Of a stretch of 64,000 bases of DNA, positions 3,923 to 64,000 are shown piece after piece. Location of the stretch: positions 62,001-126,000 of IMG/VR virus record IMGVR_UViG_3300044821_000131; one strand, given 5' to 3'. How positions within the stretch are numbered: position 1 is the stretch's first letter; every line of letters begins with the position of its first letter. The notes below the pieces were generated by a model. That model made no database searches and was not told the DNA's origin. It was given only the letters and a program-made list of their open reading frames with translations. Made by a program: the position numbers and the translations under genes.

Positions 3923-6868
3923 TTGGCGGGCTACGGGTTAATCTTCGGGCAAATGTTCAAGGTTTCGAGAGTCGTCGATTCTGCCAGCCTAAAGGAAGCG
4001 CGTGCTATCATGCGCCGAATTTATGATGAACATCCTGACCATTGGCCCCATGGCCTTTCTGCCGATCACTTCGACGACGGGTGCTACCTGATCCGTGAGA
4101 AACGATCCTCCACTCCAGTTGGATTTGCCGGCTTCCAGCGGCGTTGGGAATTCGATGGAGACTCCCCGAAACGCGTTGGCTTCTATTCCATAGGCATCCT
4201 TCCGGAGTACCGCCAGAACGGGTTCGCGAAGGAAGCGATCGGCAAATTGATCTCGATGAAGTCTGCCGGTGTAGATCGAGTCAAAGCCCTAATCGTTAAA
4301 GGTAACACACCGTCCTTGAGACTGGCATCATCCTTGGGCGTGCCCGCTATCGTCAAGTCGGCTACGACGACTCAAACGGCCCAGCGTCATCCGTTCGGCC
4401 TCAAGGATGTAGGGGCGATCGGGGGCGCAGCACTTCTAGGTGACACTTGGAATCAAAGTCGTAAGGCGGTCGGATATGCAAACAAGATGACCGCGCTGCA
4501 TGAGGCTCTAGCCAAACGGAAGTTCGCCGACATGCAGGATCCGGACGCGTTCTACGGTCTGATGCATGATTACGGAACCATGGCGCAGGGGGCATTGAAG
4601 ACCCGGGTGTTTGGTGTCCCGTTTCATACCATCGGCAGCGCTTTCCCGTTATCGCGTATTTCCACCGGTGACCAGACTAAAAAGTTGTCAATCGCTCAGT
4701 TGTTGAATCATTACAGCGGCAATAGGCCACTGGATCCAGAAACGACCAAGAGTTTGGAGGATGCCTACGGCCATTACGCCGGGTATTCCCGAAATCCTTC
4801 CGAGATTCAATTCCGGGAGTTCACCACCGGTAATTCCATAGGTAGCGCCCATCAGATTACCGGAGGCATGAGAACGTCCGGTATTACCCCGGAAAAGTGG
4901 GGTGAGATGCTCAAGTCATCGGATCCAATGAAAGCGCTCATGTCCCATATCAAATTGTCTCCATACCGGAAGGTCGCGTTGCGGGACATGTACGAGAACT
5001 TCGGAAAGGGACTTTTGACTGATAATCAGCCCGCAGCCGAATTCTTTGCCGGCAAGATGCCCGTCAATCCTTTCGGTGGTGGCCCCGCAGCCTACGGACG
5101 TGGTATCATAGGCGCCGCGCGTCAGCTTCGACCCCTAGCCGGTGCTGGCGCACTAGGCCTTGCCGGCTATGAGGCTTATAGGCGCACGAAGAAAGCCAGC
5201 GCCCAGTTACAGCGCAAAGATCGTGAAACGGCAGCGGCGGGCCTGTTGGGAGGGGCGGGTCTGGCTTCCAGTGCTCGTCGTTATCGTCCCTCCAATCTCA
5301 TTTTATCAACTGGCGGGCATCTTAAGGAGCCGGTCGCTTGGCTGGATACTGGCGCCGGTCACATCACTCCGGCGCGAGCGATGGCCGAATTACTTCGTCA
5401 GCACCCGGCAGTACAGTCGGGAGATTTCAGCGTAGGCGAGGCATACCGTACAATGAATGAACCTTACCTGAAGGAGTGGCATCAGGGTAAAGGCATGTTG
5501 GGTCCAGAGAATTCGAAGACGCTGTCCCCAATCTCCAACTTGGTACACGGGTTCTCCGATAAGTTCATAAATCCATTCACTGTAAAAGGAATGGAAAAGT
5601 CCAAACCTCACGCTCTAATGATGCTGGAACACGGCATGGGCGGAAATCAGTTTACATTTGGCGGTGCGATTCGTAATCCGCAATTCACTTGGCACCCGAA
5701 AGGTGGCGTGGGCTTCGTCTCGGACTTTGTCCATGACCCGTCTGATATTGCCCAAAAAGACACACTTTTGAATGTGGGCGGCTATCTGAATAAGATGCCT
5801 GCCATTACTTTCGGCAAGCCGCAGTCTCCGAACAAGTATGGACCTCTTTTAAAGCCTCTGATCAATACTTCGGTGCATCCGTTGTTGCAGCAGAAGGTCA
5901 TCGATAACGCGCGCGAGTGGCTGGTAGGTAAACGCAATCCGGCAGATGTATGGCACAATTTAGCGTCCGGAATGAAGGCCACAGATCCTGAAGGCTCGGC
6001 GCGACTTACGGCGGCGGTCCAGACTGGTAAAAAGATTGTTACGGTTTCGGGATCGTCCCGTGGTGATCTGGTAGCCCACCGTGCGGCCGATCTACAGCGT
6101 GAGTTAAGAGCCAATGGCTTGGACGGTCATTTTCAGGTCGTGGCGGCGTTGGGTAACGCCCATAATCATCCACAAGATCTATCTCATCGGCTACTGGATC
6201 ATTATCCCGAAGTGGTGCGGATTGGACACACTGCGAATTATCCTGGTGCCGACATGACGGATCTTGTGCATGCCTCGGATTTCCATTGGGGTTCAACCGG
6301 GGCTTCGGCTCACGCTGAAGCGATGTTGTCGGCTACCCCGACCGCGTTCGTAACCCGGTTCAATGATTCGCCAGAAGGACCTGGTGGTCTTGATAATCAG
6401 CTACGGGAAATGCAAGCCCGTGGATTGGACACATCACATTTCGAGCATATGCGTTCGAAGGGCTACAATCTCGATAGTTGGAATCGTGGCCTGATCAATC
6501 ACATAAAGACTAACATGGCGGGCAAAGAGTTGGGGGTAGAGTCGGCCAATAATGCCAAAGAACTGCTGCCGTTCTTACGGCGCATGTCTGGTGGCGAAAT
6601 CATGCGGTATGCGGATCGGGCGTCGCATCAACTTAACGCCACAGAATTTGAGCGTCGACGCTTATCGGACGCTCTGATCGAACATGCTGCCGTGCTTCGG
6701 TCGGGTGCTGCGAATGCCCGGCTGATGCGTTTGGGTGCAGGTGGTGCGTTAGCGGGTGCGGGTTTATATGCGTTGGGCAAGTCACAGATGGACCGGCCTC
6801 CGGTTCAAGGTCGATTTGCCGACGCGATTCAGAGATTCTCAAACTTATTTCATCAATATCAAAGATAA
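3923..6868 (+). CDS. multidomain protein: GNAT acetyltransferase + unknown domain + GT-B glycosyltransferase (MurG/MGDG-synthase-like)
   Basis: GNAT: VGFYSIGILPEYRQNGFAKEA...NTPSLRLASSLG. GT28-like: TGAGHITPARAMAE, KIVTVSGSSRG, SDFHWGSTGASAHAEAMLSATP. Confidence 0.75.
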   Translation: MAGYGLIFGQMFKVSRVVDSASLKEARAIMRRIYDEHPDHWPHGLSADHFDDGCYLIREKRSSTPVGFAGFQRRWEFDGDSPKRVGFYSIGILPEYRQNGFAKEAIGKLISMKSAGVDRVKALIVKGNTPSLRLASSLGVPAIVKSATTTQTAQRHPFGLKDVGAIGGAALLGDTWNQSRKAVGYANKMTALHEALAKRKFADMQDPDAFYGLMHDYGTMAQGALKTRVFGVPFHTIGSAFPLSRISTGDQTKKLSIAQLLNHYSGNRPLDPETTKSLEDAYGHYAGYSRNPSEIQFREFTTGNSIGSAHQITGGMRTSGITPEKWGEMLKSSDPMKALMSHIKLSPYRKVALRDMYENFGKGLLTDNQPAAEFFAGKMPVNPFGGGPAAYGRGIIGAARQLRPLAGAGALGLAGYEAYRRTKKASAQLQRKDRETAAAGLLGGAGLASSARRYRPSNLILSTGGHLKEPVAWLDTGAGHITPARAMAELLRQHPAVQSGDFSVGEAYRTMNEPYLKEWHQGKGMLGPENSKTLSPISNLVHGFSDKFINPFTVKGMEKSKPHALMMLEHGMGGNQFTFGGAIRNPQFTWHPKGGVGFVSDFVHDPSDIAQKDTLLNVGGYLNKMPAITFGKPQSPNKYGPLLKPLINTSVHPLLQQKVIDNAREWLVGKRNPADVWHNLASGMKATDPEGSARLTAAVQTGKKIVTVSGSSRGDLVAHRAADLQRELRANGLDGHFQVVAALGNAHNHPQDLSHRLLDHYPEVVRIGHTANYPGADMTDLVHASDFHWGSTGASAHAEAMLSATPTAFVTRFNDSPEGPGGLDNQLREMQARGLDTSHFEHMRSKGYNLDSWNRGLINHIKTNMAGKELGVESANNAKELLPFLRRMSGGEIMRYADRASHQLNATEFERRRLSDALIEHAAVLRSGAANARLMRLGAGGALAGAGLYALGKSQMDRPPVQGRFADAIQRFSNLFHQYQR

Positions 6869-7527
6869 TGTCCGAAACAATCTACGTTGGTCTGTTTCAA
6901 GGTAATAATAAAAAGTCCCCATTGGTAAAATATAATGTTCAAGGCGATATACAAACCATCGCGGCGCTGGCACACAGGACGTTGCGAGGTATATTATTGC
7001 TTGAAGCTGATGGGTGCTTTGATGATTTGACAATAGGGGTTCATCCAATGTCACAGGATACGCTCGACATCATTGAACCTTTGCATCAATTAATGCACTG
7101 TCTTTGGACTGTGCGGGCGGATTACGACACATTCGGAAGTAAAATCGCTAATGTCGAGTTTATAGTCGCACTGGTAGAATTTAACGTTATGCTGTTAGGC
7201 TCCAAGATTGGTCGTACGGGTAACGCTTCCACGGACAGGTGGACGCGTCATGAGATTTGGCAGCGCTTGTGTTGTTTCAATATGTCGAATGCCAACAGAC
7301 CGTCGGAGTCGGAGTTAACGGCGGACTCATATCAAAATATCGTCGAGTTGTTGCGTGACCTCTATGTTCTGTACGCTGAAGCTCCGATTGATGAGTACAT
7401 TAGCAATAAGTTCATATACGATCCCATCAAACCAGACATGGAAATCTTTGTCTCCAATAAGAAAGAACTGGCTTGGACAGCCAAGGCCTTTAAATCGAAC
7501 AAAGCTTTAAATCGAACAAAGCTTTAA
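6868..7527 (+). CDS. hypothetical protein
   Basis: 219-aa ORF, TAATG coupling; C-terminus runs into the 17-nt repeat. Confidence 0.7.
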   Translation: MSETIYVGLFQGNNKKSPLVKYNVQGDIQTIAALAHRTLRGILLLEADGCFDDLTIGVHPMSQDTLDIIEPLHQLMHCLWTVRADYDTFGSKIANVEFIVALVEFNVMLLGSKIGRTGNASTDRWTRHEIWQRLCCFNMSNANRPSESELTADSYQNIVELLRDLYVLYAEAPIDEYISNKFIYDPIKPDMEIFVSNKKELAWTAKAFKSNKALNRTKL

Positions 7528-7568
7528 ATCGAACAAAGCTTTAAATCGAACAAAGCTTTAACCGAATA
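7484..7568. repeat. 17-nt AT-rich tandem repeat, ~5 copies
   Basis: AAAGCTTTAAATCGAAC exact at 7501, 7518, 7535; degenerate at 7484 and 7552. Confidence 0.95.
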
Positions 7569-7618
7569 AATCATTACCGTCTTTAAATACGGTACTTCTG
7601 TCAGTTAAATCAAAATTT

Positions 7619-7981: not shown

Positions 7982-7998
7982 CAACAAAATATAACACT

Positions 7999-9378: not shown

Positions 9379-9385
9379 AATCCCA

Positions 9386-9706: not shown

Positions 9707-9725
9707 ATTATCGGTTTAAAACAAC

Positions 9726-10445: not shown

Positions 10446-10446
10446 T

Positions 10447-12058: not shown

Positions 12059-12065
12059 ATAAATT

Positions 12066-12344: not shown

Positions 12345-12351
12345 GATTCCA

Positions 12352-13800: not shown

Positions 13801-14991
13801 CAAAGTGCAGGCAGAGTTTAGTTGGGTAATGGTTTGGTAAGGTCACGTGTGGTCGTGTGAGGGTATAGTCAGGTTAGGTACTGGTCAAGTTAAGCGTGGT
13901 GCTGGCGAAGTGCGGTATTGTGTAGCGTCGGCAAGGTAATGTTACGCGTGGTGACGGCAAAGTAATGTTACGCGTCGTGACGGCAACGTATCGTTTAGTT
14001 AAGGTAAAGTAAGGTGGAGCGCAGTGCAGGTAATGTTACGCGGTGTGAGGGCAACGTATCGTCTAGTTAAGGTAAAGTACAGTGGTGTGATGGTCAGGTT
14101 TGGCCTTGTGCGGGTACGGCAAAGTATAGTTCGGTATTGGCAAAGTTTCGTATTGTGAGGGTAAGGTAAAGTCTGGTCACGTAACGGTAAGGCGTGGTCG
14201 TGTGAGGGCATCGTAAAGTTCTGTCTTGTCTTGGCACTGTAAAGTTCAGTGCTGGCGTGGTGCAGTCGTGTGGAGGCACTGTTTGGTAGCGCGCAGGTAA
14301 AGTAGAGTGCCGTGCCGTGCTGGTAAGGTCTCGATATGCGAAGTGATGGCAAAGTTCTGTTGCGTGTCGGCAAAGTTGAGTCGTGTAACGGCAAAGTCCG
14401 GTCGTGTAACGGCAAAGTCCAGTCCTGTGTCGGCGTAGTGCAGTCCAGTCGTGTCACGGTTTGGTATAGTACAGTGAAGTGCTGGCGTGGTACAGTCCCG
14501 TTAAGGCCCTGTTTGGTAAAGTGAAGTGGGGGCAAAGTTCTGTGTTGTGTCGGCAATGCAAAGTATCGCGCAGTGCAGGCAATGTACAGTTCCGTTCGGG
14601 TCATGTTAGGTGCAGTATAGGCAAGGTCAAGCGCAGTGCAGGCAACGTCAAGTGCAGTAAAGGCGAAGTCATGTTAGGTGCCGTGAAGGCAACGTATGGT
14701 GGCGTTCGGTTTGGGTATGGTATCGTGCAGTGAGGTGAAGGCTAAGTATGGCGCCGTAGAGGCAAGGTTGGGTCCCGCAGAGTGATGGTATGGTCAAGTA
14801 TAGTGCGGTGAAGTGACGGCAAAGTTCAGTAACGTAACGTGAAGGCAAAGTGTGGTAACGTGGTGTGATGGCCGAGTACCGTATCGTCACGTGCGGGCAT
14901 AGTGCCGTGAGGTGAAGGCAACGTGCCGCATCGTCACGTGAGGGCAGAGTAGCGTATCGTCACGTGCGGGCAAAGTATGGGTTATGTTGGC
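13801..14991 (+). ncRNA. pentamer-periodic array [NN-NGY]n punctuated by NN-NGGY hexamers; candidate guide RNA for the RAMP
   Basis: 14581 onward parses as aa-tgt ac-agt tc-cgt tc-gggt ca-tgt ta-ggt gc-agt at-aggc aa-ggt ca-agc gc-agt gc-aggc; the register held throughout where I parsed it; 5- and 26-nt periods are not codon multiples. Confidence 0.8.
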
Positions 14992-16544: not shown

Positions 16545-16905
16545 AAAGGCAAAAGGTAAGAGAACCAAAATCTCGTCCTCGTCCTGCGGGGCTTCGAGGT
16601 TCAGGCTTCATATAAGTTATAGACCAGAGACACCTATCGAAATGTTTGGCGCCAAGCACAATCTCACGCTACACGTGGAGGAGCGCGAAGCAGATCGGCC
16701 TAATTACCGAGCAGATAATCGATATCATGCCAGCTTTCCAAATGTGGAGGTTAAGGACGGAATCTTTCTTAGATCTGTTTTCGGCGACGGCGATACGGTT
16801 GCAGCAGCACTTAAGGACTATTGTGGTCAACTGTCCTCGAAATGTATAGTGATTGACGCTATGCTGGAAACTCGTCGAGAGCTTGATGTGCCGAAACTCT
16901 TATGA
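16534..16905 (+). CDS. hypothetical protein (weak HicB-like segment)
   Basis: YHASFPNVE...FGDGDTVAAAL. Confidence 0.6.
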   Translation: MKSKKAKGKRTKISSSSCGASRFRLHISYRPETPIEMFGAKHNLTLHVEEREADRPNYRADNRYHASFPNVEVKDGIFLRSVFGDGDTVAAALKDYCGQLSSKCIVIDAMLETRRELDVPKLL

Positions 16906-17693
16906 ACCTATATCTAAAAGATTCAGACGGTAATTGGAAATCACACAGCTACGAAACGTTATCCGATTTGGCCAATGAGTTTGCCAAACGTAACATAAAA
17001 ATCGGCAATGACGTGACGATCGGCGATTACGTGGCGCTCGGCAATGACGTGACGATCGGCGATGACGTGATGATCGGCAATTACGTGAGGATCGGCAATC
17101 GCGTGACGATCGGCAATTTCGTGAAGATCGGCGATTACGTGACGATCGGCAATCGCGTGGCGATCGGCAATCGCGTGACGATCGGCAATGGCGTGACGAT
17201 CGACAATTACGTGACGATCGGCGATGACGTGACGATCGGCAATCGCGTGACGATCGGCGATTACGTGGCGCTCGGCAATGGCGTGACGATCGGCGATGAC
17301 GTGGCGATCGGCAATGACGTGAAGATCGGCAATGACGTGGAGATCGGCAATGACGTGAGGATCGGCAATCGCGTGATGATCGGCAACGACGTGGAGATCG
17401 GCGATGACGTGATGATCGGCGATTACGTGGTTATTCCCAAAGCTGCGAACGTCCAACTCCAATACGACTTAGTAGTTATCAACAACTTGGGATCCCGGAA
17501 CGCGGCCTTATCTGCTGTTAAAATCAAGGATATCATCCATGTCGCGACTGGGTGCTTCAGTGGCACGATTGATGAGTTTGAGAAGAGGGTAAAGGAAGTG
17601 CATGGGGAGAGTGAGCATGGGCAACAGTACGCTATGGCTTTAACTTACATTCATTCGAGGTTGGGTCGTAAAACAAGAGCTCGGAAGAAATAG
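16902..17693 (+). CDS. left-handed beta-helix (hexapeptide repeat) protein
   Basis: Long run of IG(N/D)xVx hexapeptides from an 18-nt repeat; C-terminal GSRN...TGCFSGTIDEF. Confidence 0.85.
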   Translation: MNLYLKDSDGNWKSHSYETLSDLANEFAKRNIKIGNDVTIGDYVALGNDVTIGDDVMIGNYVRIGNRVTIGNFVKIGDYVTIGNRVAIGNRVTIGNGVTIDNYVTIGDDVTIGNRVTIGDYVALGNGVTIGDDVAIGNDVKIGNDVEIGNDVRIGNRVMIGNDVEIGDDVMIGDYVVIPKAANVQLQYDLVVINNLGSRNAALSAVKIKDIIHVATGCFSGTIDEFEKRVKEVHGESEHGQQYAMALTYIHSRLGRKTRARKK

Positions 17694-21953: not shown

Positions 21954-23180
21954 ATGTGTGATCACTCACGATTCGAAATTCATGCCACCGTTGATCGTCA
22001 AGTACACGATCAAAAACTCAAATCCCTAAATCTTAAACTCGCCGTCAAATGCGTCGACTGCGGTCAAGAATTCTATGTGGCCGGCACCGCACCGGACCTG
22101 ATACTTAAAGAAAGAGAACCAGATGGCACAGTCCACACCTACGCCGCCACCCGTACCTTGCCCGTACTCGACGTGGCATCCTCCATCACGCCACTGCCTC
22201 CGCTGAGCATCATCATACCCGTGCTCAACGATAAGGATGAGGCCAATGCAACAATTCGATCAATCCGCGCAACCTCGCCGCCGGATGTGGAAATTATCGT
22301 GGTCGACGATGCCTCAGACAACGTCCTGGTGATCGAGGATAAGTCCGCACGCCTGATTCGATACAAACAACGTATAGGTGCTGGAGCTGCACGCCACGCG
22401 GGGGCATTCGAAGCCAAAGCGCCCTACTTGCTGTTGCTCGACGCGCATATGCGCTTTGATCCCGGGTGGTATGAGCCGGCCATGGCACGTCTTCGTAATA
22501 CTAAACTGAACGTCGTGTGGTGTGCTGCTTGTATGGGCCTTAGCGAGGAAAATATGGAGCTGACGCCACATACGCCGATGTACACTGGTGCTGATCTGAT
22601 CTTCTGGGACCCGATTACCAAGCGGGTGTTCGAAGGCGTGTGGCGTCCGGAGGTTCAACACGCGGACGACTATGAGATTCAGTGTTTGATGGGTGCTTGT
22701 TACTTTATGCGTCGCGATTGGTTCTTTCACATTCATGGTCTTGAGTGGAACAGGAAATGGGGCAGCGAAGAACCTTTTCTCTCGTTGAAGACTTGGCTGG
22801 CCGGCGGAACAGTGCGTCTGATGAAGAGCGTCAAGATCGGCCACAAGTTCCGCAATTCCACCCCGTACTCGACCGAGCTGTCCAGCATACTGTACAATAA
22901 GATCCGGGCGATGAAGGAACTGCTGCCCGACGAGCTGTACCAGTTTCTGCTCGCCAAGATCCCGGATGACAAAAACAAGTTTAGTGCTTTACAGCAAGTG
23001 AAATTCAGCGACGCGGACATCACTGAGGAGCAGGCATACTATAAAAAGATTTTCACACATGATGTGTACTGGTTCTTCGAGAAGTTCGGGATTAAGAATC
23101 CGCTTGACGAAACTAAGCTCGATGGTAATGTAACTTTGAGTGGCGGGTTGGCGCAGCCTGGCAGCGCGCAAGTCTCATAA
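21954..23180 (+). CDS. GT-A glycosyltransferase, polypeptide GalNAc-transferase-like (GT2/GT27)
   Basis: SIIIP, EIIVVDDAS, LLLLDAHMRFDPGW (DxH), and MGACYFMRRDWF...WGSEEPFLSLKTWLAGG...IGHKFR, which parallels the ppGalNAc-T WGGENxELSFRxWxCGG...VGHxFR block. Confidence 0.8.
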   Translation: MCDHSRFEIHATVDRQVHDQKLKSLNLKLAVKCVDCGQEFYVAGTAPDLILKEREPDGTVHTYAATRTLPVLDVASSITPLPPLSIIIPVLNDKDEANATIRSIRATSPPDVEIIVVDDASDNVLVIEDKSARLIRYKQRIGAGAARHAGAFEAKAPYLLLLDAHMRFDPGWYEPAMARLRNTKLNVVWCAACMGLSEENMELTPHTPMYTGADLIFWDPITKRVFEGVWRPEVQHADDYEIQCLMGACYFMRRDWFFHIHGLEWNRKWGSEEPFLSLKTWLAGGTVRLMKSVKIGHKFRNSTPYSTELSSILYNKIRAMKELLPDELYQFLLAKIPDDKNKFSALQQVKFSDADITEEQAYYKKIFTHDVYWFFEKFGIKNPLDETKLDGNVTLSGGLAQPGSAQVS

Positions 23181-23218
23181 ACTTGAGGTCGTTGGTTCAA
23201 ATCCAACATCCGCTCCCA
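23142..23218 (+). tRNA. tRNA with CAU anticodon (elongator Met or Ile2), CCA encoded
   Basis: Acceptor GGCGGGT/ATCCGCT, D arm GCGC/GCGC, anticodon CAAGT-CTCATAA-ACTTG, T arm GTTGG-TTCAAAT-CCAAC; lacks initiator hallmarks. Confidence 0.9.
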
Positions 23219-30155: not shown

Positions 30156-30608
30156 ATGCCTGATCTCATAATCGGTATCTCAGTCCTGCAACCTACTTGG
30201 ATCGATAAGGTCTATCGACTCTGGTTTCAAGCCCAGAAAGCCGACGGCGCAAAAAATCAAGGCTGGATCTTCGCCGTCGATAGCACGTCGGCCAGTACCT
30301 TGACCAAGATGCCCGAATACCCGGATGGCTGTAACTCGATCTGGCACTTCACCAGGCAGGGCGACACACTCAACTGCTCACCTTCGGTGAATTGGATATC
30401 TTGGGGTTTCCACAATGCTGGTAGCTGGACGACGCGCTATGTCGAGATGACCATCGCGGAACAGTCCATGTCGAAAGCGGGCGATGATACCGGCGAAGTC
30501 CCTACACGTTTGCGTATTGGACACACGGTTCATTACGATCTGAATAATGGTGCGGCCGATCCTCAGCAGGTGATCGCCGAGTACCGTCAGAAAGGGGTCC
30601 TGAAGTGA
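30156..30608 (+). CDS. hypothetical protein (DUF6527-like segment)
   Basis: WHFTRQGDTLNCSPSVNW. Confidence 0.6.
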   Translation: MPDLIIGISVLQPTWIDKVYRLWFQAQKADGAKNQGWIFAVDSTSASTLTKMPEYPDGCNSIWHFTRQGDTLNCSPSVNWISWGFHNAGSWTTRYVEMTIAEQSMSKAGDDTGEVPTRLRIGHTVHYDLNNGAADPQQVIAEYRQKGVLK

Positions 30609-32524: not shown

Positions 32525-32528
32525 CGTT

Positions 32529-32909
32529 ATGCGACACATTGCTACATTCATCTTGGCTGATGCCCTCACTAAGATCGCGGCGCCCACCTCGTCCAATGCT
32601 GGTAGTTCCATGGCCGGCGGCCTGTTTCGTGGTGGACTGAAGGCGACACAGTCACAAGGTGGGTTGAAGGGTATGAGTGATTTACCGACTGGGATTCAAC
32701 GGCTCTCCATGTTTGGAAAAGCTTTTGGCTCCAAGGCATTTCGTCCGGCCAAGAATCCATTTTCGGCTATTAATCCTTCCGAGTTAGTTCGAACGGCCAG
32801 GCTACGGCAGATGAGCAAGTCAGCGCCATCAATGGGCAACACGGTGATGAGCAACATTCGAAACAGTTTGGGTGGCGGCGCGGCGATGGCGGCACCGGTG
32901 GCTAAGTGA
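32529..32909 (+). CDS. small G/A/M-rich K-x-A-type protein
   Basis: DALTKIAAP followed by a low-complexity tail. Confidence 0.65.
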   Translation: MRHIATFILADALTKIAAPTSSNAGSSMAGGLFRGGLKATQSQGGLKGMSDLPTGIQRLSMFGKAFGSKAFRPAKNPFSAINPSELVRTARLRQMSKSAPSMGNTVMSNIRNSLGGGAAMAAPVAK

Positions 32910-45766: not shown

Positions 45767-46365
45767 AAGAAGTTGAAAAATTACAGTTGGCCAAGGTCGC
45801 GGTAAACTTCCGCGGTGTGCCGGTCTATTCCAATCCTTTTCGATTTCTGGGGCGCATAGCCGATCAGCTTCAAGTTAATCCTTTTCTTCGTACTGCCGAC
45901 AAGGTGTTGCCTGGCACAACCGCGCAAGTTGTACACGAGTTGAGAAATGATTTGTTTAATCCGAATGTGCGTGGCATGTCGGCTGGAGGTGCGATATACA
46001 AACAACCCGGTTCACCGAACGGCAGGAGTACGATTGCTCACGAGTGGTTTCACAATGCGGTGCCGCTGGTGGGTCGCAGCGAGACACTGGCGCGCTTCTA
46101 TGGTGGTTATGCTCAGCCTCGTAATGTTGGGTTGTTACCGAGATTGCAGAGTGGTTTGAATTCGGTGAAGTCCTATTATAGACGTGACATCGATCAATAC
46201 AGTCCGATCATGGCTTGGTGGAAACAGCGACAAGCTATTTCTGGTCGGTCGATGCCCCTCGATAATCTCAACCGCTCGCTCTCTAACCCGGTTACCTTCA
46301 GGCCGCGTAACCCTGCTGCGGTATCGAATAATCTTGCTGCACAGCGAAATGACATGTTAGGCTGA
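45763..46365 (+). CDS. K-x-A-type putative virion protein, possible zincin HExxH
   Basis: LQLAKVA at the N-terminus; TIAHEWFH. Confidence 0.65.
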   Translation: MKEVEKLQLAKVAVNFRGVPVYSNPFRFLGRIADQLQVNPFLRTADKVLPGTTAQVVHELRNDLFNPNVRGMSAGGAIYKQPGSPNGRSTIAHEWFHNAVPLVGRSETLARFYGGYAQPRNVGLLPRLQSGLNSVKSYYRRDIDQYSPIMAWWKQRQAISGRSMPLDNLNRSLSNPVTFRPRNPAAVSNNLAAQRNDMLG

Positions 46366-46366
46366 A

Positions 46367-46807
46367 TTGATGATGAAAGTGGCCCAGATACTCCGTCTCA
46401 GCAAGTGTGCCCATGAACTCACACCAATCAACGTGGTGCGAAAATTTCCGATGCGCGCCGTGGCACTTTTGGGTGGTACTGCTTTGGCCGCTCCCTTACT
46501 GCCTTGGAATACCGCAGGTGCCATAAAAGATCGAATGCAAGGTACAGAACATGAAGATCAGCTATCCCAGTCCATTGCCACTGATACTGGTCGCGGCATT
46601 GGTACGGCATTAGGTGCAGGAGCTGTTCGTGGACTTGGTGACACGTGGCATTTGCCGAAGACGAGTCCGTTATTCAACTTGGCTCTGGTGTTAGGAGGTG
46701 CTGGGGTTGGTGGTTTTCTGGGGCACCGGCAGGGTAAAATGATCGGACAAGACTTGTTTCCGGGATCGTTGTCCGATAGAATTCATCGCGCAGCCAATCG
46801 TTTTTAA
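46367..46807 (+). CDS. K-x-A-type Gly-rich hydrophobic protein
   Basis: MKVA, LSKCA; LGGAGVGGFLG. Confidence 0.65.
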   Translation: MMMKVAQILRLSKCAHELTPINVVRKFPMRAVALLGGTALAAPLLPWNTAGAIKDRMQGTEHEDQLSQSIATDTGRGIGTALGAGAVRGLGDTWHLPKTSPLFNLALVLGGAGVGGFLGHRQGKMIGQDLFPGSLSDRIHRAANRF

Positions 46808-46811
46808 ATTT

Positions 46812-47456
46812 ATGCCATTCGACACTCAAGTCTTCAAAGAACTGATGACCTCGTTATCAGAACTCCGCGCCGATCTGAAAAAACAAGCGTTCGTCCCGAT
46901 GCCTGGGGATATGCCGCCGGGTGGTGGTCAAGGCGGCCCTCCGCAGGGCGGACCTGGCGGACCTCCTCCGGGAATGGATCCTTCACAGATGCAGGGTGGT
47001 GGCGGGCCTCCTCCGGGAATGGACCCGTCGCAGATGCAGGGTGGTGGTGATCCTTCTCAAGGTGGTGGCGGACCTCCGGGAATGCCGCCTGGCGCCGCGC
47101 CTGGTGGTTCTGGTGACCCGGCTGGAGGTTCTGATCCCTATGGTCCTGTATTCGAATCCATTCTGCAGGGCATGCAGCAGTTGATGGAAACTGTGCAACA
47201 GATGGGTCAGGAGTTTGATCAGCGCCTGGCAAAATCTGAGCAGGAGTTGCAACAGATGACGCAGGTACAGCAGCAGACTGATGATCAGATGAAGCAGATT
47301 CAGCCATTGGTGCAGCAGATGCTGCAGCCGGCACCGATGGACGGTTCAATTCAGGGTCAAGCTCCGCAAGGGGCCGGCGCGGATCAAGGTATGCTGCCGG
47401 ATCAGAGCGGTGGACCTCCGATGTCGGCGCCGGGTGAAATGGGAATGATGCAATGA
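46812..47456 (+). CDS. G/P/Q/M-rich low-complexity protein with coiled coil
   Basis: KKQAFVP, repeated GGPPPGMDPSQMQGGG, Q-rich helix. Confidence 0.8.
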   Translation: MPFDTQVFKELMTSLSELRADLKKQAFVPMPGDMPPGGGQGGPPQGGPGGPPPGMDPSQMQGGGGPPPGMDPSQMQGGGDPSQGGGGPPGMPPGAAPGGSGDPAGGSDPYGPVFESILQGMQQLMETVQQMGQEFDQRLAKSEQELQQMTQVQQQTDDQMKQIQPLVQQMLQPAPMDGSIQGQAPQGAGADQGMLPDQSGGPPMSAPGEMGMMQ

Positions 47457-47740
47457 ACAACGCCGATAAACTTTTCGTCGCCGCGGCCATCTTGATCAAA
47501 GACGCGGCAACGGCGCCGTCCAACATGGGCGGCACGGGAACGATGCCGATGGCTTCGATGATGCAACAGATGTCGTCCTCCGTGGCCAAGAGCCCGCTGG
47601 AGGCTACGTCCATGAACCCGATGGGTGCGTCAGGCGGCATGCTGGCGCAATGGGGCAGCAAGATGAATATGCCACTGGCATCGCTGTTGAATAATTGGAA
47701 GATGCAGATGGCTTCGAACAAGGGTCGAGCTCTGTTCTAA
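47453..47740 (+). CDS. small Met-rich K-x-A-type protein
   Basis: ILIKDAA. Confidence 0.6.
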   Translation: MNNADKLFVAAAILIKDAATAPSNMGGTGTMPMASMMQQMSSSVAKSPLEATSMNPMGASGGMLAQWGSKMNMPLASLLNNWKMQMASNKGRALF

Positions 47741-55094: not shown

Positions 55095-55095
55095 T

Positions 55096-56940
55096 ATGCG
55101 TGCGATTGATCTATACGTCAACTCAGTGTTGCCACCCGATCTTCGGTCTAACAATCGTGTGCTCAACAAGAAGAATATCGAGTCGGTACTGGCCGACGTA
55201 GCTCGACGTTATCCTGAGCAGTACGCTGACATATCAAAGTCGCTTTCGGACATCGGGCGCAAAGCGGCTTACCTACAAGGAGAAACTCTTAATTTATCGG
55301 ACTTTCAACCGGTACTGGATCGAGACGGTTTGCTGAAGCAAATGGATCATGAGGTGCGAGCGTCGGATGCCGAGACTAAAAATCCTGACGAGCGTGAAAA
55401 GAAGCGACTCATTATCTGGGCCAAGTATTCTACAGCCATTGAGAAATCCACTTCCGAAAACGCGCGACATACTAATCTCGGACGTTCGGTGACTTCTGGG
55501 GCGCGCGGTAACGCCCTGCAATTGAAAGCAATTTTGTCCACGCCGGCGCTCTATACTGATTACAAAGACAGAGTTATTCCGATGTTTATCAGACATGGTT
55601 TCGGGGAAGGTCTGCGTCCCGCTGAATACTTGGCCTCGTCTTTCGGTACACGTCGCTCTGTGATCTCAACCAAGAGCAGCACGGCCCGCGGCGGAGACTT
55701 CATGAAGCAGATTATAGCGGCTACCACACCGATAATCGTCACCGAAGATGATTGTGGTACGAGTAACGGTCTCGACTTCGATGTTACCGATCATGAGATT
55801 CAAGGTCGAGTGCTGGCCAAGGAAGCGGGTGGAGTGGCGGTTGGTACGACAATCGACAAACATGTAATACAAGCTTTACATAAAGCGGGTGTGAAGCGAA
55901 TCATTGCGCGAAGTCCGATGACGTGTACTTCGAAGAGTGGAATCTGTTCTCATTGTTTGGGCACTCTGCCGTCCGGACATTTTGCACCCCGAGGATACAC
56001 CGCCGGGACCACGGCCGCTCAGGCAGTCGGAGAACCAGTTGTGTCGGGAGCTCTGGCGGCCAAGCACACCGGCGGATCTTTTAAAGGTTCACAAAAACAA
56101 TTTGCTGGATTCGACACGATCACGCAGCTCGTGCAATCGCCGGAAACATTTCCGAATAAGGCTCCGTTGGCCGAGACCTCCGGTAAGGTCGATAGTATCG
56201 AAGATGCACCGCAAGGTGGCAAGTACGTCACGATAGGTGAAAATAAACATTATCTGTTGCCCGATTTCGCCCCGTTGGTCAAAGTGGGTGATACTGTCGA
56301 AGCCGGCACGCCTCTTAGCGAGGGCGTGGCTGATGTGGCCGATGTGGTACGCCTGCGCGGTCTGGGCGAGGGCCGCCGATATTATGTGGATCGCCTGAAA
56401 CAAGCTATGGAAGAATCAGGGGCGGGTCACCCGAGCAAATTAAATCTGGAACTGATCGCCCGCGGGACCTTAGACCACGTCAAAATCGACGATCCTGACG
56501 GCTTGGGCGGGTACCTTCCCGATGACGTCGTGTCCTACGGAACAATGTCCAATTCGTACGTGCAACCCAAATCGGCCACCATGATGAGTCCCGACCAAGC
56601 CGTAGATAAATACTTGCACGCCCCGGTATTGCACTTCACTATCGGTACCAAAATGACACCGAAGATGATAGATCGGTTGAAAAGTGCTGGTATTAAAGGA
56701 GTTGTAGCATCCGGAGAAGAACAGCCGAAATTCCATCCGGAGATGGTGCGGCTGCGCGCGGCGGCGCACAACAATCCTGACTGGTTGGCTCGGATGCACT
56801 CGAGTTATTTGATGAGCAATCTGGATGAATCGGCATCCCGGGGCAGGGACACGGACACTATGGAGAACACGCATTTTGCGCCCAGGCTTGCAATCGGCAA
56901 GAACTTTGGCAAAAATATTGACACGACTGGAAAGTTCTAA
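55096..56940 (+). CDS. rpoC: phage RNA polymerase beta' C-terminal fragment
   Basis: SGARGN, F.EGL..AEY..S.FG.R (bridge helix), VTEDDCGT, RSPMTC...GICSHCLG, AAQAVGEP...KHTGG (trigger loop). Confidence 0.9.
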   Translation: MRAIDLYVNSVLPPDLRSNNRVLNKKNIESVLADVARRYPEQYADISKSLSDIGRKAAYLQGETLNLSDFQPVLDRDGLLKQMDHEVRASDAETKNPDEREKKRLIIWAKYSTAIEKSTSENARHTNLGRSVTSGARGNALQLKAILSTPALYTDYKDRVIPMFIRHGFGEGLRPAEYLASSFGTRRSVISTKSSTARGGDFMKQIIAATTPIIVTEDDCGTSNGLDFDVTDHEIQGRVLAKEAGGVAVGTTIDKHVIQALHKAGVKRIIARSPMTCTSKSGICSHCLGTLPSGHFAPRGYTAGTTAAQAVGEPVVSGALAAKHTGGSFKGSQKQFAGFDTITQLVQSPETFPNKAPLAETSGKVDSIEDAPQGGKYVTIGENKHYLLPDFAPLVKVGDTVEAGTPLSEGVADVADVVRLRGLGEGRRYYVDRLKQAMEESGAGHPSKLNLELIARGTLDHVKIDDPDGLGGYLPDDVVSYGTMSNSYVQPKSATMMSPDQAVDKYLHAPVLHFTIGTKMTPKMIDRLKSAGIKGVVASGEEQPKFHPEMVRLRAAAHNNPDWLARMHSSYLMSNLDESASRGRDTDTMENTHFAPRLAIGKNFGKNIDTTGKF

Positions 56941-57602
56941 TGACCAACCAAGATAAAATCTTTGTCAGCTCCTATTTAATCAAACGAGCTTTCGAGCCTG
57001 CGTCCCTGCTCGGTGGCGATACAGGTTTCGAACACGCCATGGGCGCTTTGTCCTTTGTGCCTGGTGTGGGATTCCTCGGCAATCTGGGGCAAGGTGCCAG
57101 TCAACTTATTCGAGGTCATCCTTGGCAGGCTCTAGGTAGTGCAGCCCTTGGCGCTGGCTCTCTTTTCACAGGCGGTCTAGCGAATGATGCGGTAAAAGGT
57201 ATCGGAGCAGCCAGCCGAATCGGCAAGGCTTTGCCTACCTTTTCTAAAGGTGTGGGCATGTTGAACAAGGTACCGAAGGCTGTGATGGGAATGGGTGCGC
57301 TCAAGTCCCCGAGCTTCCAGTCGTTCGCTCGTAAGTACCCGTCGAATTGGGTTAGTGGCGGCCAGTCTCTTCAAGGGCCGAAGAATTTTGCCAAGAACTT
57401 CGTCGGCAGCAACGTCGTGACCGGAGCGGCGAATCATCTTGATTCCGCCGGCAGTACTGCCCGGGACAATGTGTTCAATTCGACGATGAATTTTGCTGAT
57501 AAGACTCCAAGTTTCATGGGTGGAGGAATGTCGGGCGATCCTCGTTATTTGGCTCCCCAGCCGATCCCGGCCCCGTTCGAGCCGATGTTTGGTCACAGTT
57601 AA
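56940..57602 (+). CDS. K-x-A-type Gly/Ala-rich putative virion protein
   Basis: YLIKRAF; LSFVPGVGFLGN...ALGAGSLF. Confidence 0.7.
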   Translation: MTNQDKIFVSSYLIKRAFEPASLLGGDTGFEHAMGALSFVPGVGFLGNLGQGASQLIRGHPWQALGSAALGAGSLFTGGLANDAVKGIGAASRIGKALPTFSKGVGMLNKVPKAVMGMGALKSPSFQSFARKYPSNWVSGGQSLQGPKNFAKNFVGSNVVTGAANHLDSAGSTARDNVFNSTMNFADKTPSFMGGGMSGDPRYLAPQPIPAPFEPMFGHS

Positions 57603-57652
57603 GTTTGCGGTTGCAATACCATCCTTGCGACGTTAGACTGCAGACAATATTT

Positions 57653-58327
57653 ATGCGGGATGAATTTTCACATAGTGTGGCCTTCGCACAAGGTATCCAG
57701 AAACAACTCGTCCACCGCGCGAAAGAAGCCATGTGTAAACGTGCGCTCAACCCGCGCGTGATCGAAAAAGTTATCTACGACGCGCGGCGCACTCCAGAAC
57801 TCGCAGCATTAGGCCAAAGTATATTTGCTCGGTCATATCGGCAATCCAATCCCTTGAAAGGTATGCTCATGACCGGTTTGGCAGGTTACGGGCAACTTCG
57901 AAATTTGCACGCCGACCGCATGGGCTTCATTAGAGAGATCGCCGGGTTGCGTGGCGAGATGAACCGGTTGCCTGAAGGTAATGCAAATCGGGAATTTCTA
58001 GCCAATCGCATCGCCGACAAGATGAATGCATTCAAATCAGAAAAGCGTACACGCTTGGCTGAAGTGGGTGCCACCGCCGAACCACGATTGAAATTTCTAC
58101 GAACGACAGTACCCGCCACCGTAGCCGGCGGTGCCGCATTGGGAGCCGGATCAGTACTGGGTAATCTTTCGGGTCAAGCGGCATCGCAGAAGGATGTTTC
58201 CGGTGCTCCATTTGGATCCCGGCTGCAGTATCTTCTCAATCCGTCGAAAGTCCCGTCCTCGGTGATGCCTCAACCTCAAGATCCTGGCTCTCAGACATCG
58301 TCAGCAACCGACTCAGGTGGCGTATAA
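57653..58327 (+). CDS. K-x-A-type putative virion protein
   Basis: AKEAMCKRA; AGGAALGAGSVLG. Confidence 0.7.
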   Translation: MRDEFSHSVAFAQGIQKQLVHRAKEAMCKRALNPRVIEKVIYDARRTPELAALGQSIFARSYRQSNPLKGMLMTGLAGYGQLRNLHADRMGFIREIAGLRGEMNRLPEGNANREFLANRIADKMNAFKSEKRTRLAEVGATAEPRLKFLRTTVPATVAGGAALGAGSVLGNLSGQAASQKDVSGAPFGSRLQYLLNPSKVPSSVMPQPQDPGSQTSSATDSGGV

Positions 58328-58328
58328 A

Positions 58329-59048
58329 ATGAAACATACTGAAATTTTGAAGTTCGCGTCCATCCTTAGCGACGGACTGGAGAAAGAAGCCGGACTGGCA
58401 GGACTGGCCGGTGGCATTGGTCGCTTCGCGGGACGGGGTTTTGGTGACGCCGGGCGCTTGGGCGTTCAAGGTGCTATGGGCACAGCACGCGGTTTGGGTC
58501 GGGCCGCGGGCAACGTAGGTCAATTTCTGACCAAAGAAAGGCAGAACCCGTTTCCAGTGCTCGGACGTGAATTCGCCCAGTCCGCGCGACAAAGCTACGC
58601 CGGTATTCATCCGCAATCCACCGGTCAGTTCCATGGTCCAACACCGTATGTGCCGCAGAGCATGCCCACCGCGTACATGAATCCGGCGTTCTCACCGAAA
58701 ACTTTTCATCCCGCTGCCGCACCCAACATGCCTTATTATAGCAGTAACCCATTGCTGTCGACGCAATTTCACGGATCGTCCCCCGCGCCCACAGCCGGTC
58801 CTTCAAGTGGTTCGAACAACTACTACGACCGGTTCAAGACGTATTGGACTTCACGTACCCCAGTGCAAAAGGGAGCCTTGGGTTACGGCGCCTTGACGGC
58901 GGCATCATTACCGAGTAATTACATCAACAATCAGCATGTGGCTTGGCAGCAGCAGCATCCGATCATGTCTTGGGCTGGCCAAACGTTCGGCGGTATGCCA
59001 AATTACACGCGGCGCAATTATTTGATGCCGTCCGTGCTTCAACGATAA
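58329..59048 (+). CDS. K-x-A-type putative virion protein
   Basis: GLEKEAG; C-terminus GALGYGALTAA...N..QQ.HPI.SW paralogous to the next gene. Confidence 0.7.
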   Translation: MKHTEILKFASILSDGLEKEAGLAGLAGGIGRFAGRGFGDAGRLGVQGAMGTARGLGRAAGNVGQFLTKERQNPFPVLGREFAQSARQSYAGIHPQSTGQFHGPTPYVPQSMPTAYMNPAFSPKTFHPAAAPNMPYYSSNPLLSTQFHGSSPAPTAGPSSGSNNYYDRFKTYWTSRTPVQKGALGYGALTAASLPSNYINNQHVAWQQQHPIMSWAGQTFGGMPNYTRRNYLMPSVLQR

Positions 59049-59052
59049 AAAT

Positions 59053-59556
59053 ATGAATAACACAGCTAAACTATTTCTGGTGACATCCATCCACGAAGAA
59101 ATGCGCAAGGAAGCCGCAGCCAACTTGCTCGAACGCGGTCTCGGTTACCTTGGACGTGGCGCCGAACAGATCGAGTCGCGTATGCCGAACAACTCTTTTT
59201 CTCAGGGTGTTGGCCGATTGGCGAGTCGTGCTGTTCCGCAACTCGGAGCCTCCAGCCCCAGCTGGTTGTCAAAGCTGCTCGTCGGATCACGTGAACTGGC
59301 CCCTGCGACTCAGGACATGGGCCTGTCCGGTTTGGAAAATCACTTTCAAGGTGAATTGGGCAAACGTCTATTAAGCCGCGGCACCGTTGGTGGTGCTTTG
59401 GGTTATGGCGGTCTGACCGCGGCGGAAGCCCCGGGCAAATACGAGAACAATCAACGGTTCGCGCAGCAACAGGCACATCCGATTCGTTCGTGGCTGTCCC
59501 AACATCTGCAGGGCAAGCCGAAATTACAGCATGAATCGTATCTGAGTCCTTTTTGA
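59053..59556 (+). CDS. K-x-A-type putative virion protein, paralog of 58329
   Basis: MRKEAA; GALGYGGLTAA...QQAHPIRSW. Confidence 0.7.
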   Translation: MNNTAKLFLVTSIHEEMRKEAAANLLERGLGYLGRGAEQIESRMPNNSFSQGVGRLASRAVPQLGASSPSWLSKLLVGSRELAPATQDMGLSGLENHFQGELGKRLLSRGTVGGALGYGGLTAAEAPGKYENNQRFAQQQAHPIRSWLSQHLQGKPKLQHESYLSPF

Positions 59557-59560
59557 ATCT

Positions 59561-61735: not shown

Positions 61736-61740
61736 CCAAC

Positions 61741-62703: not shown

Positions 62704-62740
62704 CTTGTGACGAGTGGCGGATGATTATAAACTCACTTTT

Positions 62741-64000
62741 ATGAGACAGCAATTGATTACCTGGTTGATCGACGAAATCGCACCGGAGATTCGTAAAAAT
62801 CGGGATCCCGAAGGCACAATCCTCAAGTTCGCCAACGAAAAGAATTTAGCCCCGGCCTTGGTGCAAAGCCTTGGGCAACTGTTCAACACAGCCAAGACCT
62901 TGGCCTTCATGGAGAAGTCCGCCAATCGTGGGGCTTCATTTCCATTACTGGACGTGGACAAGATGGTGGAAAAATATACCGCCGTGCCTCATACGAAGTC
63001 GGCCTCCAAGAATCTGATGGCAGCAACCGAATCAGCGTACGATCACTTCGGCTTCGACACTCCGTCCAAATCCTTGGCTGCCTGTTTCAAGGATGTACCT
63101 GGGTTGAAAATCGAGGATGAGCAGGTGTACAGCGAGGAACCGGTTAAATCGGCCTCGTCTGATACTCGTCAGGCGTTGCGTTCTGAATCTGAGACGCGGC
63201 ATCTGATTGATACTCTAACTCAGGCCAAGGCAGATTTTGAACAGGACGCGCGCGAGTTGCTGATGAAGTCGGCGCAGCAGATCAAACAGGCCGGGCTGAG
63301 TTTCGAAAAGATTGAGCAAGACGCGCTCTGGGTACACGGCGATATAATCAAACCGGCTACGGCGTTGTTGGCGTCTTATTGCTCGGCGGAACACATCAAA
63401 GTGGCCCGGGCACGTGATGCCGGGGAAAATCGTTTGGTTCGGGACAACCTCGATCTCATTAAGAATTTGGAACTGGTGAGTGATTGTTTGTTTAAGATCG
63501 CGGCAACCGATGAGATGATGGCAGCAACCCGCAAGTTGCCAGACAGCGCGAACCCGGTAGACCCCGCTAAAGGCTACAAGTACGAGCGTTCGCCGGATCC
63601 GGAGGAAAGGGTGCGTCCGCTTGATTTACACCAGCCGCCTGACAAACCTCATAAATCCCCAAAAGCTGACCGACCAGAGTCGCGCTCGACTGGTCGATCT
63701 GGAGGACAAAAGAGCGCACCGGCGGCCGAAGACAAGGGCTATTTCGCTCATGTCGGAGGTGCCTTAAATGCTGCGGCCGCACCTTTGACCAACATCCCTA
63801 CTTTCCAGAAGAAGTTCAAAGAGATGCTCGGGCATGGTCGCAATTCGGATCAGCAGCATGTAGATACATCGTTCGAGGATGCAAAGCATCTGGCTGTTTT
63901 ACAGAACTTGTTGACGACAGATGACGTTCTGTCCGAAGCTGATCCGGAAGCTGTCGTAAACATGTACAACACTGTGCGTCGTGCGGCTCCATCTTTGGCT
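62741..64000 (+). CDS. large K-x-A-rich putative virion protein, truncated by the window end
   Basis: Frame from ATG 62741 reads open to base 64000 (MRQQLITWL...KFANEKNLAP...EKSA...TKSAS...VKSAS...MKSAQ); absent from the track because there is no stop. Confidence 0.75.
   Translation, partial: MRQQLITWLIDEIAPEIRKNRDPEGTILKFANEKNLAPALVQSLGQLFNTAKTLAFMEKSANRGASFPLLDVDKMVEKYTAVPHTKSASKNLMAATESAYDHFGFDTPSKSLAACFKDVPGLKIEDEQVYSEEPVKSASSDTRQALRSESETRHLIDTLTQAKADFEQDARELLMKSAQQIKQAGLSFEKIEQDALWVHGDIIKPATALLASYCSAEHIKVARARDAGENRLVRDNLDLIKNLELVSDCLFKIAATDEMMAATRKLPDSANPVDPAKGYKYERSPDPEERVRPLDLHQPPDKPHKSPKADRPESRSTGRSGGQKSAPAAEDKGYFAHVGGALNAAAAPLTNIPTFQKKFKEMLGHGRNSDQQHVDTSFEDAKHLAVLQNLLTTDDVLSEADPEAVVNMYNTVRRAAPSLA

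Follow-up and report, generated by a model that had tools for sequence, protein, structure and literature searches.

Introduction

Maturation of virus heads by a dedicated protease is known from T4, phiKZ and the herpesviruses. T4 gp21 cuts after Glu in the motif L/I-x-E, and the internal proteins of T4 lose short N-terminal leaders after they have been loaded. To our knowledge, T4 packages no RNA polymerase (RNAP) and has no enzyme fusions of the kind considered here, and we know of no processing of RNAP or of cargo enzymes in herpesviruses. The polyvalent proteins of phages and conjugative elements, which Iyer et al. are said to have described in 2017, combine several enzymes, which enter the host along with the DNA and may be split into separate effectors by processing. 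SPN3US gp245 recognizes the motif A-x-E, with Ser favored after the cut (PMC10052503). The beta subunit of the virion RNAP (vRNAP) of 201phi2-1 loses a 275-residue propeptide, and the SPN3US vRNAP subunits are unprocessed (PMC5694885). The assemblin of pseudorabies virus (PrV) cuts after Ala at the sites YLQA-T and VQA-S (PMC4498786). The present study concerns a stretch of 64,000 nucleotides (the window), bases 62001-126000 of the 204,257-bp virus record IMGVR_UViG_3300044821_000131. An original prediction made from its sequence had noted a recurrent K-x-A motif near N termini and at the domain junctions of fusion proteins and had read it as a processing signal. The results presented here indicate that K-x-A is probably the recognition site of the phage's own prohead serine protease, encoded at genome positions 128091-129587, which would trim head proteins and separate fused enzymes.

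The record is a single contig with direct terminal repeats and was judged complete; its source is a complete jumbo phage genome of ~204 kb, with nearly all genes on the + strand. A megablast search of GenBank phages with 20 kb of this genome gave no match at the DNA level. By protein, the nearest cultured relatives are Salmonella phage Arash (OQ632216) and Vibrio phages D69, D181 and D148. These relatives are distant, with 27-29% identity in the major capsid protein (MCP) and 35-37% in the protease domain. Open reading frames (ORFs) are named below by their window start positions, and the features of the window are collected in Table 1.

A local and directional motif

The K-x-A sites of the original prediction are all present at its coordinates. 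Measured against within-protein shuffles of the window proteome, the loose motif exceeds chance only weakly, with 95 copies in the whole window versus 77.4 expected (z 2.2). Nearly all of this excess comes from ORFs 59561 (15 versus 4.3) and 62714 (10 versus 4.2), and the whole genome holds 297 copies versus 267 expected. The enrichment over shuffled controls that had been anticipated is therefore weak for K-x-A as such, but strong, local and directional for K-x-A-[S/A]. In an unbiased scan of 10-kb bins, the bin at 120-130 kb of the genome (58-68 kb of the window) contains 30 copies of K-x-A-[S/A] versus 5.4 expected (P 2e-13); the scan shows weaker peaks at 20-30, 130-140 and 170-180 kb, with all other bins at about 1x or below. 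The head module at 105.7-134.1 kb, the boundaries of which were set after the data were seen, has 34 copies versus 8.9 expected, compared with 29 versus 33.5 in the rest of the genome.

Within this module the reversed motif [SA]-A-x-K, which has equal composition, occurs 4 times versus 8.9 expected, and motifs in which K is replaced by R, E or Q are found at about 1x. Only in the module is the motif preferentially followed by S (3.3x) or A (2.0x), and the extended logo reads [D/E][D/E][L/M]-x-K-x-A-[S/A]-A. K-S-A has 17 of its 39 genomic copies in the module, often followed by S or A, and its codons differ among copies (AAA or AAG, TCN or AGY, GCN). This variation places the signal at the level of protein and rules out a DNA-level motif. 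The motifs of the T4/phiKZ type, [L/I]-x-E (1.22x) and [S/A/G]-x-E (1.03x), are similarly frequent in the module and elsewhere in the genome, and were dropped as module signals because they lack module-specific enrichment. The original prediction also held that K-x-A lies near N termini; indeed, 16 of 31 module proteins have K-x-A within the first 45 residues, compared with 39 of 242 proteins elsewhere (Fisher P 3e-5). The tail-fiber-like proteins in the same stretch (ORFs 48473, 49612 and 52114) contain zero or one K-x-A each.

The same pattern is found in six related loci, which were taken as 10 kb on either side of a homologous gene with no other criterion. These loci contain 193 copies of K-x-A-[SA] versus 43.3 expected (P 2e-62) and 33 copies of the reversed motif versus 43.3; plain K-x-A occurs 422 times versus 229, with reversed motifs at no more than 0.85x. 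A-x-K is depleted (0.84-0.85x), as against 1.84-1.87x for K-x-A and 3.8-4.5x for K-x-A-[SA]. The phage's own K-x-A sites are kept, to within three alignment columns on either side, in 47% of comparisons with orthologues, compared with 2-32% for twelve control motifs.

A predicted prohead protease

The prohead protease that the original prediction sought is most readily seen in a protein of 498 amino acids (aa) with a predicted gp21 fold, the gene for which lies 2 kb beyond the window end. The gene order protease, scaffold-like protein (483 aa), 151-aa protein, 193-aa protein and MCP is the same in this genome and the six related loci. An AF2 model built on 68 homologues (pLDDT 85) has an alpha/beta domain at residues ~20-213 that matches T4 gp21 (5jbl) with VIA Z 10.2, rmsd 3.1 over 136 residues and a Foldseek probability of 0.98. 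The next structural matches are the assemblins of varicella-zoster virus (VZV; Z 6.4), human cytomegalovirus (HCMV; 4.7) and Kaposi's sarcoma-associated herpesvirus (KSHV; 2.6). As modeled, the protease domain has the assemblin/T4 gp21 fold. It is followed in the model by a disordered linker (residues 215-241) and a helical scaffold-like domain (243-498). The sole PHROG match of the protein is a family of unknown function, and among sequence features the sole hint is a Peptidase_S78 cluster, with an Atlas score of 0.88. Of the 87 members that can be detected in the family, 86 come from metagenomes only and one has an NCBI record; several members are on contigs of 180-215 kb. A scan of viral contigs for related loci with the protease found none.

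In the alignment of the 68 homologues, which are 28-75% identical, K32 and A34 are invariant and form the motif [V/I]-K-S-A-[A/S]-S after a variable N terminus. A second site, K233/A235 (K-[A/S]-A-S), is more than 90% conserved within the disordered linker (pLDDT <50) and is tandemly duplicated in some homologues. A third, K-x-A-S, falls in a gapped variable loop near residue 445. Three conserved K-x-A sites with this placement form the pattern expected for autoprocessing. The residues H103 and S154, 51 residues apart, are also invariant in the 68 homologues. When the protease domain was co-folded with residues 24-48 of the MCP, the ipSAE was 0.44 versus 0.06 for the best control. In calibration, 80 solved complexes and 110 mismatched pairs attained this mark in 58 and 2 cases, respectively. 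Contact agreement between runs was at least 51% and partner pLDDT at least 41, and the result was rated as weak support.

The capsid proteins next to the protease carry the motif at conserved positions. The MCP is a 347-aa protein of HK97 type (phrog_2522, E 4e-4) that is 73-40% identical to its relatives, and near residue 35 it has the sequence ..DG-x-x-K-x-A-[S/A] in each of the seven genomes compared, with a one-residue shift in L015. The scaffold-like protein is rich in A, E, K and G and only 27-39% identical among relatives; K-x-A-[S/A] is present at residues ~21-30 in 6/6, and K-E-A-[S/A] occurs near the C terminus in five of six relatives.

Two large proteins of the head module are especially rich in the motif. 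Of the sites in ORF 59561, seven are kept in at least four of five orthologues (K8, K149, K187, K219, K241, K483 and K551), the first of them reading W-K-K-x-A-A. This protein is a candidate for an internal protein cleaved at multiple sites. A portal identity was ruled out, since its homologue in Arash is gp218, whereas gp204 is the portal of that phage. An Atlas search with ORF 59561 was uninformative on its fold, and the Atlas feature score of 0.60 to LPD families is too low to link it to the polyvalent proteins. In ORF 62714 the part within the window has 10 K-x-A, five of them K-S-A, and K-x-A-[S/A/T] recurs in a variable linker with a conserved domain at each end of the protein. In an attempt to locate the portal and tail genes, nine additional large proteins were scanned with PHROG, and almost all of these scans came back blank.

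Fused enzymes and RNA polymerase

The original prediction placed K-x-A at the domain junctions of two fusion proteins, ORF 43718 and ORF 3923, and comparison with homologues bears this out. Protein searches with ORF 43718 as query, in which a Nudix and a HAD domain precede the N-terminal half (N-half) of RNAP beta', listed 120 homologues of the N-half. Among those listed, about 60 are stand-alone proteins of ~375-390 aa that start mostly 5-9 residues before a TGPEAI anchor, and 52 have an N-terminal extension of at least 60 residues, which may be Nudix, 2'-5' RNA ligase-like, SET, LigD_N or a whole beta subunit. K-x-A-[S/A/T] lies within 45 residues upstream of the anchor in 39 of these 52 fusions, with a mode at 8-11 residues, as against ~3% by chance estimated from the motif density in the core. 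The remaining 13 fusions include at least five with K-x-A-[G/M/I] in the 45-residue stretch and a further two in which the motif lies at a greater distance upstream. The predicted new N terminus of the fusions thus coincides with the natural N terminus of the stand-alone proteins. The spacing between DKSAA and the anchor is longer in ORF 43718 because of a perfect 12-bp x 6.3 tandem repeat (44554-44629), which codes for a (VTPQ)x6 linker right after DKSAA. The closest homologue, P0088, has only two VTPQ copies, indicating a recent expansion in the spacer.

The site at the end of the Nudix domain, FKSAE, is supported less firmly. K-x-A is found 15-30 residues past the sequence Y-x-G-P in eight of nine Nudix-fused homologues, whatever domain comes next, but P0088, which is without the HAD domain, has K-E-S at this point. 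A different result was obtained for the beta' C-terminal half (C-half; ORF 55096), which has five K-x-A, including K492 and K529, all of them in folded conserved sequence and each retained in 0/2 orthologues. Judged by this lack of retention, the C-half sites are probably chance occurrences that are not used, and its K-S-A sites were set aside as processing sites.

ORF 3923 is a fusion of a GNAT domain, a linker rich in G and A, and a region at residues ~455-930 that resembles GT-B glycosyltransferases of the MurG type. The latter resemblance is not shown by Pfam alone and, at an Atlas TM of 0.5 by query and ~0.7 by hit, is only a lead, but it is in line with the GT-B domain named in the original prediction. 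Translation probably starts at M11 (3953). In an exhaustive search, the GNAT domain was found at the N terminus of many proteins of 145-1000 aa. K-x-A directly follows the end of the domain (..LA-x-SLGV-x-V..) in 124 of the 129 homologues that extend beyond it, and stand-alone GNAT proteins end at the same point without the motif. The sequence after this K-x-A is variable and often rich in Gly and Ala. The second site, K423-K-A-S, is part of a gapped linker that comes after a hydrophobic segment rich in G and A, and four of five orthologues keep this site.

The phage encodes a split multisubunit RNAP, with beta' in two halves and beta in three pieces, as identified with Pfam and PHROG. Profile searches of the whole genome found one set of beta/beta' pieces and no second, non-virion set, so the phage is not organized like phiKZ in having a second RNAP. 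The one RNAP may serve all transcription, or the host enzyme may cover part of it. Several features of the beta pieces were observed in addition. The middle piece (L011, genome 45712-47163) starts in a leader-like manner with MLTYEKIFAQA-KKA-FVES-KSA-T, and contains an insert that resembles an intein, having a Hint-like block with a Cys start and the end ..SGN|S; LAGLIDADG intein domains (PF14528) are present in several beta' homologues of relatives. The N-terminal piece (L012, genome 43441-44985) has a C-terminal domain with two H-x-T-x motifs (HITL and HVTL), a pair typical of 2H phosphoesterases. The two domains are joined via QQQ-KEA-R, making this a further enzyme-RNAP fusion with K-x-A at the junction.

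Leaders of small proteins

Many small proteins of the head module begin with a short leader that ends in K-x-A (Table 1). The product of ORF 32457 resembles them in layout, with a leader, K-x-A and then Gly-rich sequence. The leaders they have in common are of the form MNNxxxLFxxxxLI-K-x-A, and similar leaders, MNNADKLFVAAAILI-KDA, MTNQDKIFVSSYLI-KRA and MNNSEHLFMAGLLI-KSA, are found in Gly-rich small proteins around the beta' C-half and in their positional counterparts in the relatives. The sequence after K-x-A is rich in G, A and P in most of ORFs 45763, 46367, 46812 and 47453, and the leader of the last of these, MNNADKLFVAAAILI-KDA, matches those of L016 and ORF 56940. Six of seven homologues of ORF 56940 keep both the leader and K-x-A, with variation in the next residue. 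ORFs 58317 and 59053 are paralogues, and the positional counterparts of 57605, 58317 and 59053 in L013, L016 and L018 have the same layout of leader and K-x-A.

Two proteins rich in the motif were found far from the head module: a 441-aa Gly-rich protein with five K-x-A-[SA] (genome 27856-29181) and a 353-aa protein with four K-S-A (genome 173568-174629). PHROG scans of both were blank. They are candidates for additional substrates or packaged proteins.

Table 1. Features discussed in the text, with window coordinates unless the genome is named.
Feature	Position	Strand	K-x-A sites	Basis
GNAT - G/A-rich linker - GT-B (MurG-like) fusion	3923-6868	+	VKSAT K145 (4355-4363); KKASA K423 (5189-5197)	Pfam GNAT residues 21-139; Atlas structure search
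RNAP beta, C-terminal part	30605-32524	+		phrog_24349 positions 600-1095, E 7e-53
G/S-rich small protein	32457-32909	+	short leader, then K39 K-I-A-A (32571-32579)	read from sequence
Nudix - HAD phosphatase - RNAP beta' N-half fusion	43718-45766	+	FKSAE K154 (44177-44185); DKSAA K276 (44543-44551)	Pfam NUDIX, Rpb1 domains 1 and 2; PHROG HAD-like at residues 156-279
RNAP beta' N-half (in the fusion above)	43718-45766	+		Pfam Rpb1 domains 1 and 2
Four small proteins, ORFs 45763, 46367, 46812 and 47453	45763-47740	+	N-terminal leaders ending in K-x-A: 45763 K11 (45793); 46367 K4/K13 (46376/46403); 46812 K24 (46881); 47453 K16 (47498)	read from sequence
RNAP beta' C-half	55096-56940	+		Pfam Rpb1_5, phrog_25354
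G-rich, glycine-zipper-like protein	56940-57602	+	leader MTNQDKIFVSSYLI, then K15-R-A (56982-56990)	
Small head-module proteins, ORFs 57605, 58317 and 59053	57605-59556	+	in first 45 residues: 57605 K40/K45; 58317 K12/K23; 59053 K19	
Conserved head-module protein, 724 aa	59561-61735	+	15 K-x-A	orthologue retention
491-aa protein, runs 189 nt beyond window end	62714-64000	+		sequence, relatives
RNAP beta, other two pieces	genome 43441 and genome 45712			profile searches

Other features of the window

A single tRNA-Met gene (CAT) is present at 23142-23218 among glycosyltransferase-like genes. The gene at 16902-17693 contains an 18-bp x 24 repeat (17001-17429) coding for hexapeptides of the IGNDVT type, and its product belongs to a family of six paralogues at genome positions 2, 2714, 39263, 47221, 51452 and 78902 (55-80% identity). 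This scattered family accounts for a genome-wide excess of the tripeptides IGN, VTI and TIG. A region of ~1 kb at 13929-14977 has several tandem arrays of 21-26 bp and 68 bp, with units of the type CGGCAAAGT..., and its only ORFs are short and dubious; this region may be non-coding, with a regulatory or origin-like role. Near-perfect intergenic tandem repeats are located at 2760-2855 (27 bp x 3.6) and 7488-7561 (17 bp x 4.4). Two proteins of ~700 aa (33372-35519 and 37054-39150) are 80% identical over the first 100 residues and have a signal-peptide-like start, MKK..LL..S.LLGFGQTPTNLPTPG, to which the N terminus of ORF 35821 is related. They could be interchangeable proteins of the surface or for receptor binding, and may give a hint of the host's envelope type.

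Phage Arash

The cultured relative Arash shows the same motif in its head block (gp216-gp228), with 24 K-x-A-[SA] versus 5.6 expected. Sites are present in the MCP (GLV-KEA-G) and in gp222, the protease homologue (GLT-KQA-AA). Arash gp206 is a 1525-aa fusion of beta to the beta' N-half, with MH-KEA-E eight residues before the diverged beta' anchor. By mass spectrometry of Arash virions, the beta-containing Gp206 ranks top by spectra (3516) and beta' Gp216 has 1210 (PMC10585845). The protease homologue Gp222 and its neighbors are also on the virion list (PMC10585845). The word protease occurs 0 times in the description of the phage (PMC10585845). The list comprises 116 proteins and includes replication enzymes (PMC10585845), so that carry-over is possible.

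Discussion

The comparative evidence supports the original reading of K-x-A as a processing site, and a scheme for its use may be proposed. The prohead protease would recognize K at P3 and A at P1 and cut before S or A; a cut after Ala seems most likely by analogy, because related proteases use P3-x-P1 sites. The protease would cut itself at its three K-x-A sites, freeing the protease domain from the scaffold-like part. The MCP would lose a leader of ~37 residues, the scaffold would be trimmed at both ends and degraded or detached, and leaders of 10-25 residues would be stripped from the N termini of the Gly-rich internal proteins, where they may act as capsid-targeting sequences before removal. 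The fusions would be split into Nudix, HAD and beta' N-half (ORF 43718) and into GNAT, linker and GT-B (ORF 3923). We infer the cleavage, the bond cut, the protease responsible and the prohead as the location; with cleavage inside the prohead, RNAP and the fused enzymes would ride in the virion. Packaging is supported indirectly because the motif is common to the MCP, scaffold and protease, because the beta' genes lie within the head module and because both of these RNAP subunits, beta and beta', are plentiful in the virions of Arash. For the GNAT/GT-B protein, packaging is only presumed.

Several observations weigh against this scheme. Cleavage in the phage and its relatives is read from sequence and models alone, and the Arash supplementary tables, when searched for peptides, contained annotation only. 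Neither the protease protein nor any of its 68 homologues has a Pfam match, and the family profile has no sequence match in the PDB; H103 and S154 are candidate catalytic His and Ser residues by their invariance alone. The K32 site is within a confidently modeled helix and could therefore be structural. Many K-x-A of the module are not conserved, including all five of the beta' C-half sites, and at some conserved sites the residue after Ala varies (F, D, W, M or G), which makes the cut bond uncertain. The six related loci are homologous, so their 193 copies of K-x-A-[SA] are non-independent events. In addition, ~40 kb separate ORF 3923 from the head module, and the genes around it are those of glycosyltransferases.

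Could the motif be a by-product of helical composition rich in K and A, or of paralogy, and have no function? The loose motif, at 95 versus 77 over the whole window, and the lack of conservation of several earlier-listed sites would fit such an origin. However, the reversed A-x-K, of equal composition, is depleted, K and A are invariant in 68 protease homologues amid variable flanks, and the junctions are conserved at 75-96% versus ~3% by chance. A composition artefact is thus ruled out by the reversed and substituted control motifs together with junction and orthologue conservation, and we regard it as highly improbable. A docking or targeting role, in which K-x-A binds the scaffold, portal or C-terminal domain of the protease and the fusions stay intact, is a more serious alternative, although still an unlikely one. 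The N-terminal leaders are positioned like capsid-targeting sequences of the T4 type, and Arash gp206 was reported at 100% coverage as one gene product. Docking does not explain why sites fall exactly where stand-alone proteins start (beta' N-half) or end (GNAT), nor why they are also C-terminal, in internal linkers and tandemly duplicated inside the protease. Invariant small residues at the Ala and the next position are what a protease subsite requires. Moreover, targeting and cleavage are coupled in T4 and SPN3US, so that docking overlaps with cleavage by the prohead protease.

It is likewise doubtful, to much the same degree as docking, that the sites are genuine but are cut by a host protease or a second phage protease, or in the cytoplasm, as part of ordinary polyprotein processing. 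Such an explanation accommodates the location of ORF 3923 and of the genome 27856 and 173568 genes outside the head module, and the assignment of the protease does rest on fold and gene position. Signal peptidase I prefers A-x-A, and Lys at P3 is unsuited to it. The motif is instead concentrated in the protease, scaffold, MCP and neighboring proteins, it co-occurs with the protease family in every related locus examined, Arash included, and RNAP subunits are abundant in Arash virions. Recognition by the phage's own prohead protease therefore appears the probable function of K-x-A.

A wider reading, somewhat less likely than not, may be offered tentatively. In a large, almost wholly uncultured clade of phages with genomes of ~180-215 kb, one K-x-A-specific capsid protease could operate a general cargo system, in which leaders and RNAP subunits carry swappable enzymes (Nudix, HAD, 2H phosphoesterase, GNAT, GT-B, SET and LigD-like) that are packed, cut free and injected with the DNA and the sole RNAP. 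If this were true, repertoires of injected effectors could be read directly from metagenomes.

The specificities of prohead proteases have so far required mass spectrometry of cultured phage, whereas the present specificity, with a probable cut before S or A, emerges from sequence alone in hundreds of relatives from metagenomes. The motif yields predicted mature ends of proteins and candidate substrates outside the head module, and it suggests that RNAP subunits and Nudix, HAD, GNAT, GT-B and 2H enzymes are made as cleavable fusions for delivery to the host. Confirmation would account for the variable extensions at the N termini of phage beta' homologues and would provide a simple rule for predicting injected proteins in the clade. 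The availability of Arash in culture makes a test practical. In the literature, coverage of which is incomplete, no K-x-A prohead protease specificity and no cleavable-cargo fusions are described.

Finally, the machinery is of a known type, that of T4, phiKZ and herpesvirus maturation; what appears to be new is the predicted specificity, together with a protease family divergent in sequence and an unusual set of putative substrates. T4 gp21 is the best structural match of the protease domain, yet T4 lacks the RNAP cargo and the enzyme fusions seen in the genes of the present phage. The phiKZ-like systems (SPN3US gp245, phiKZ gp175 and 201phi2-1) share with it an assemblin-fold protease that acts on many head proteins, a P3-x-P1 motif, N-terminal propeptides as the parts mostly removed and self-cleavage, although cleavage is predicted here, and they have a split multisubunit RNAP in the virion, where the present split RNAP is read from genes. 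They differ in cutting after Glu at A/S/G-x-E instead of at K-x-A and in having two sets of RNAP instead of one, and their proteases share no sequence similarity with the present one that could be detected. Unlike in the phiKZ-like phages, the parts predicted to be removed here are recognizable enzymes (Nudix, HAD and GNAT). Arash fuses beta to the beta' N-half, whereas the present phage fuses Nudix and HAD to it. Polyvalent proteins are giant and have peptidase domains of their own embedded in them, whereas the present fusions are of moderate size and seem to depend on the capsid protease. A parallel in layout is herpesvirus pUL26, which, like the present protease, has an N-terminal protease, a release site (R) in the linker, a helical scaffold-like domain and a maturation site (M) near the C terminus; herpesviruses, however, infect eukaryotes and have a hydrophobic residue or Gln at P3, where the phage would have Lys.

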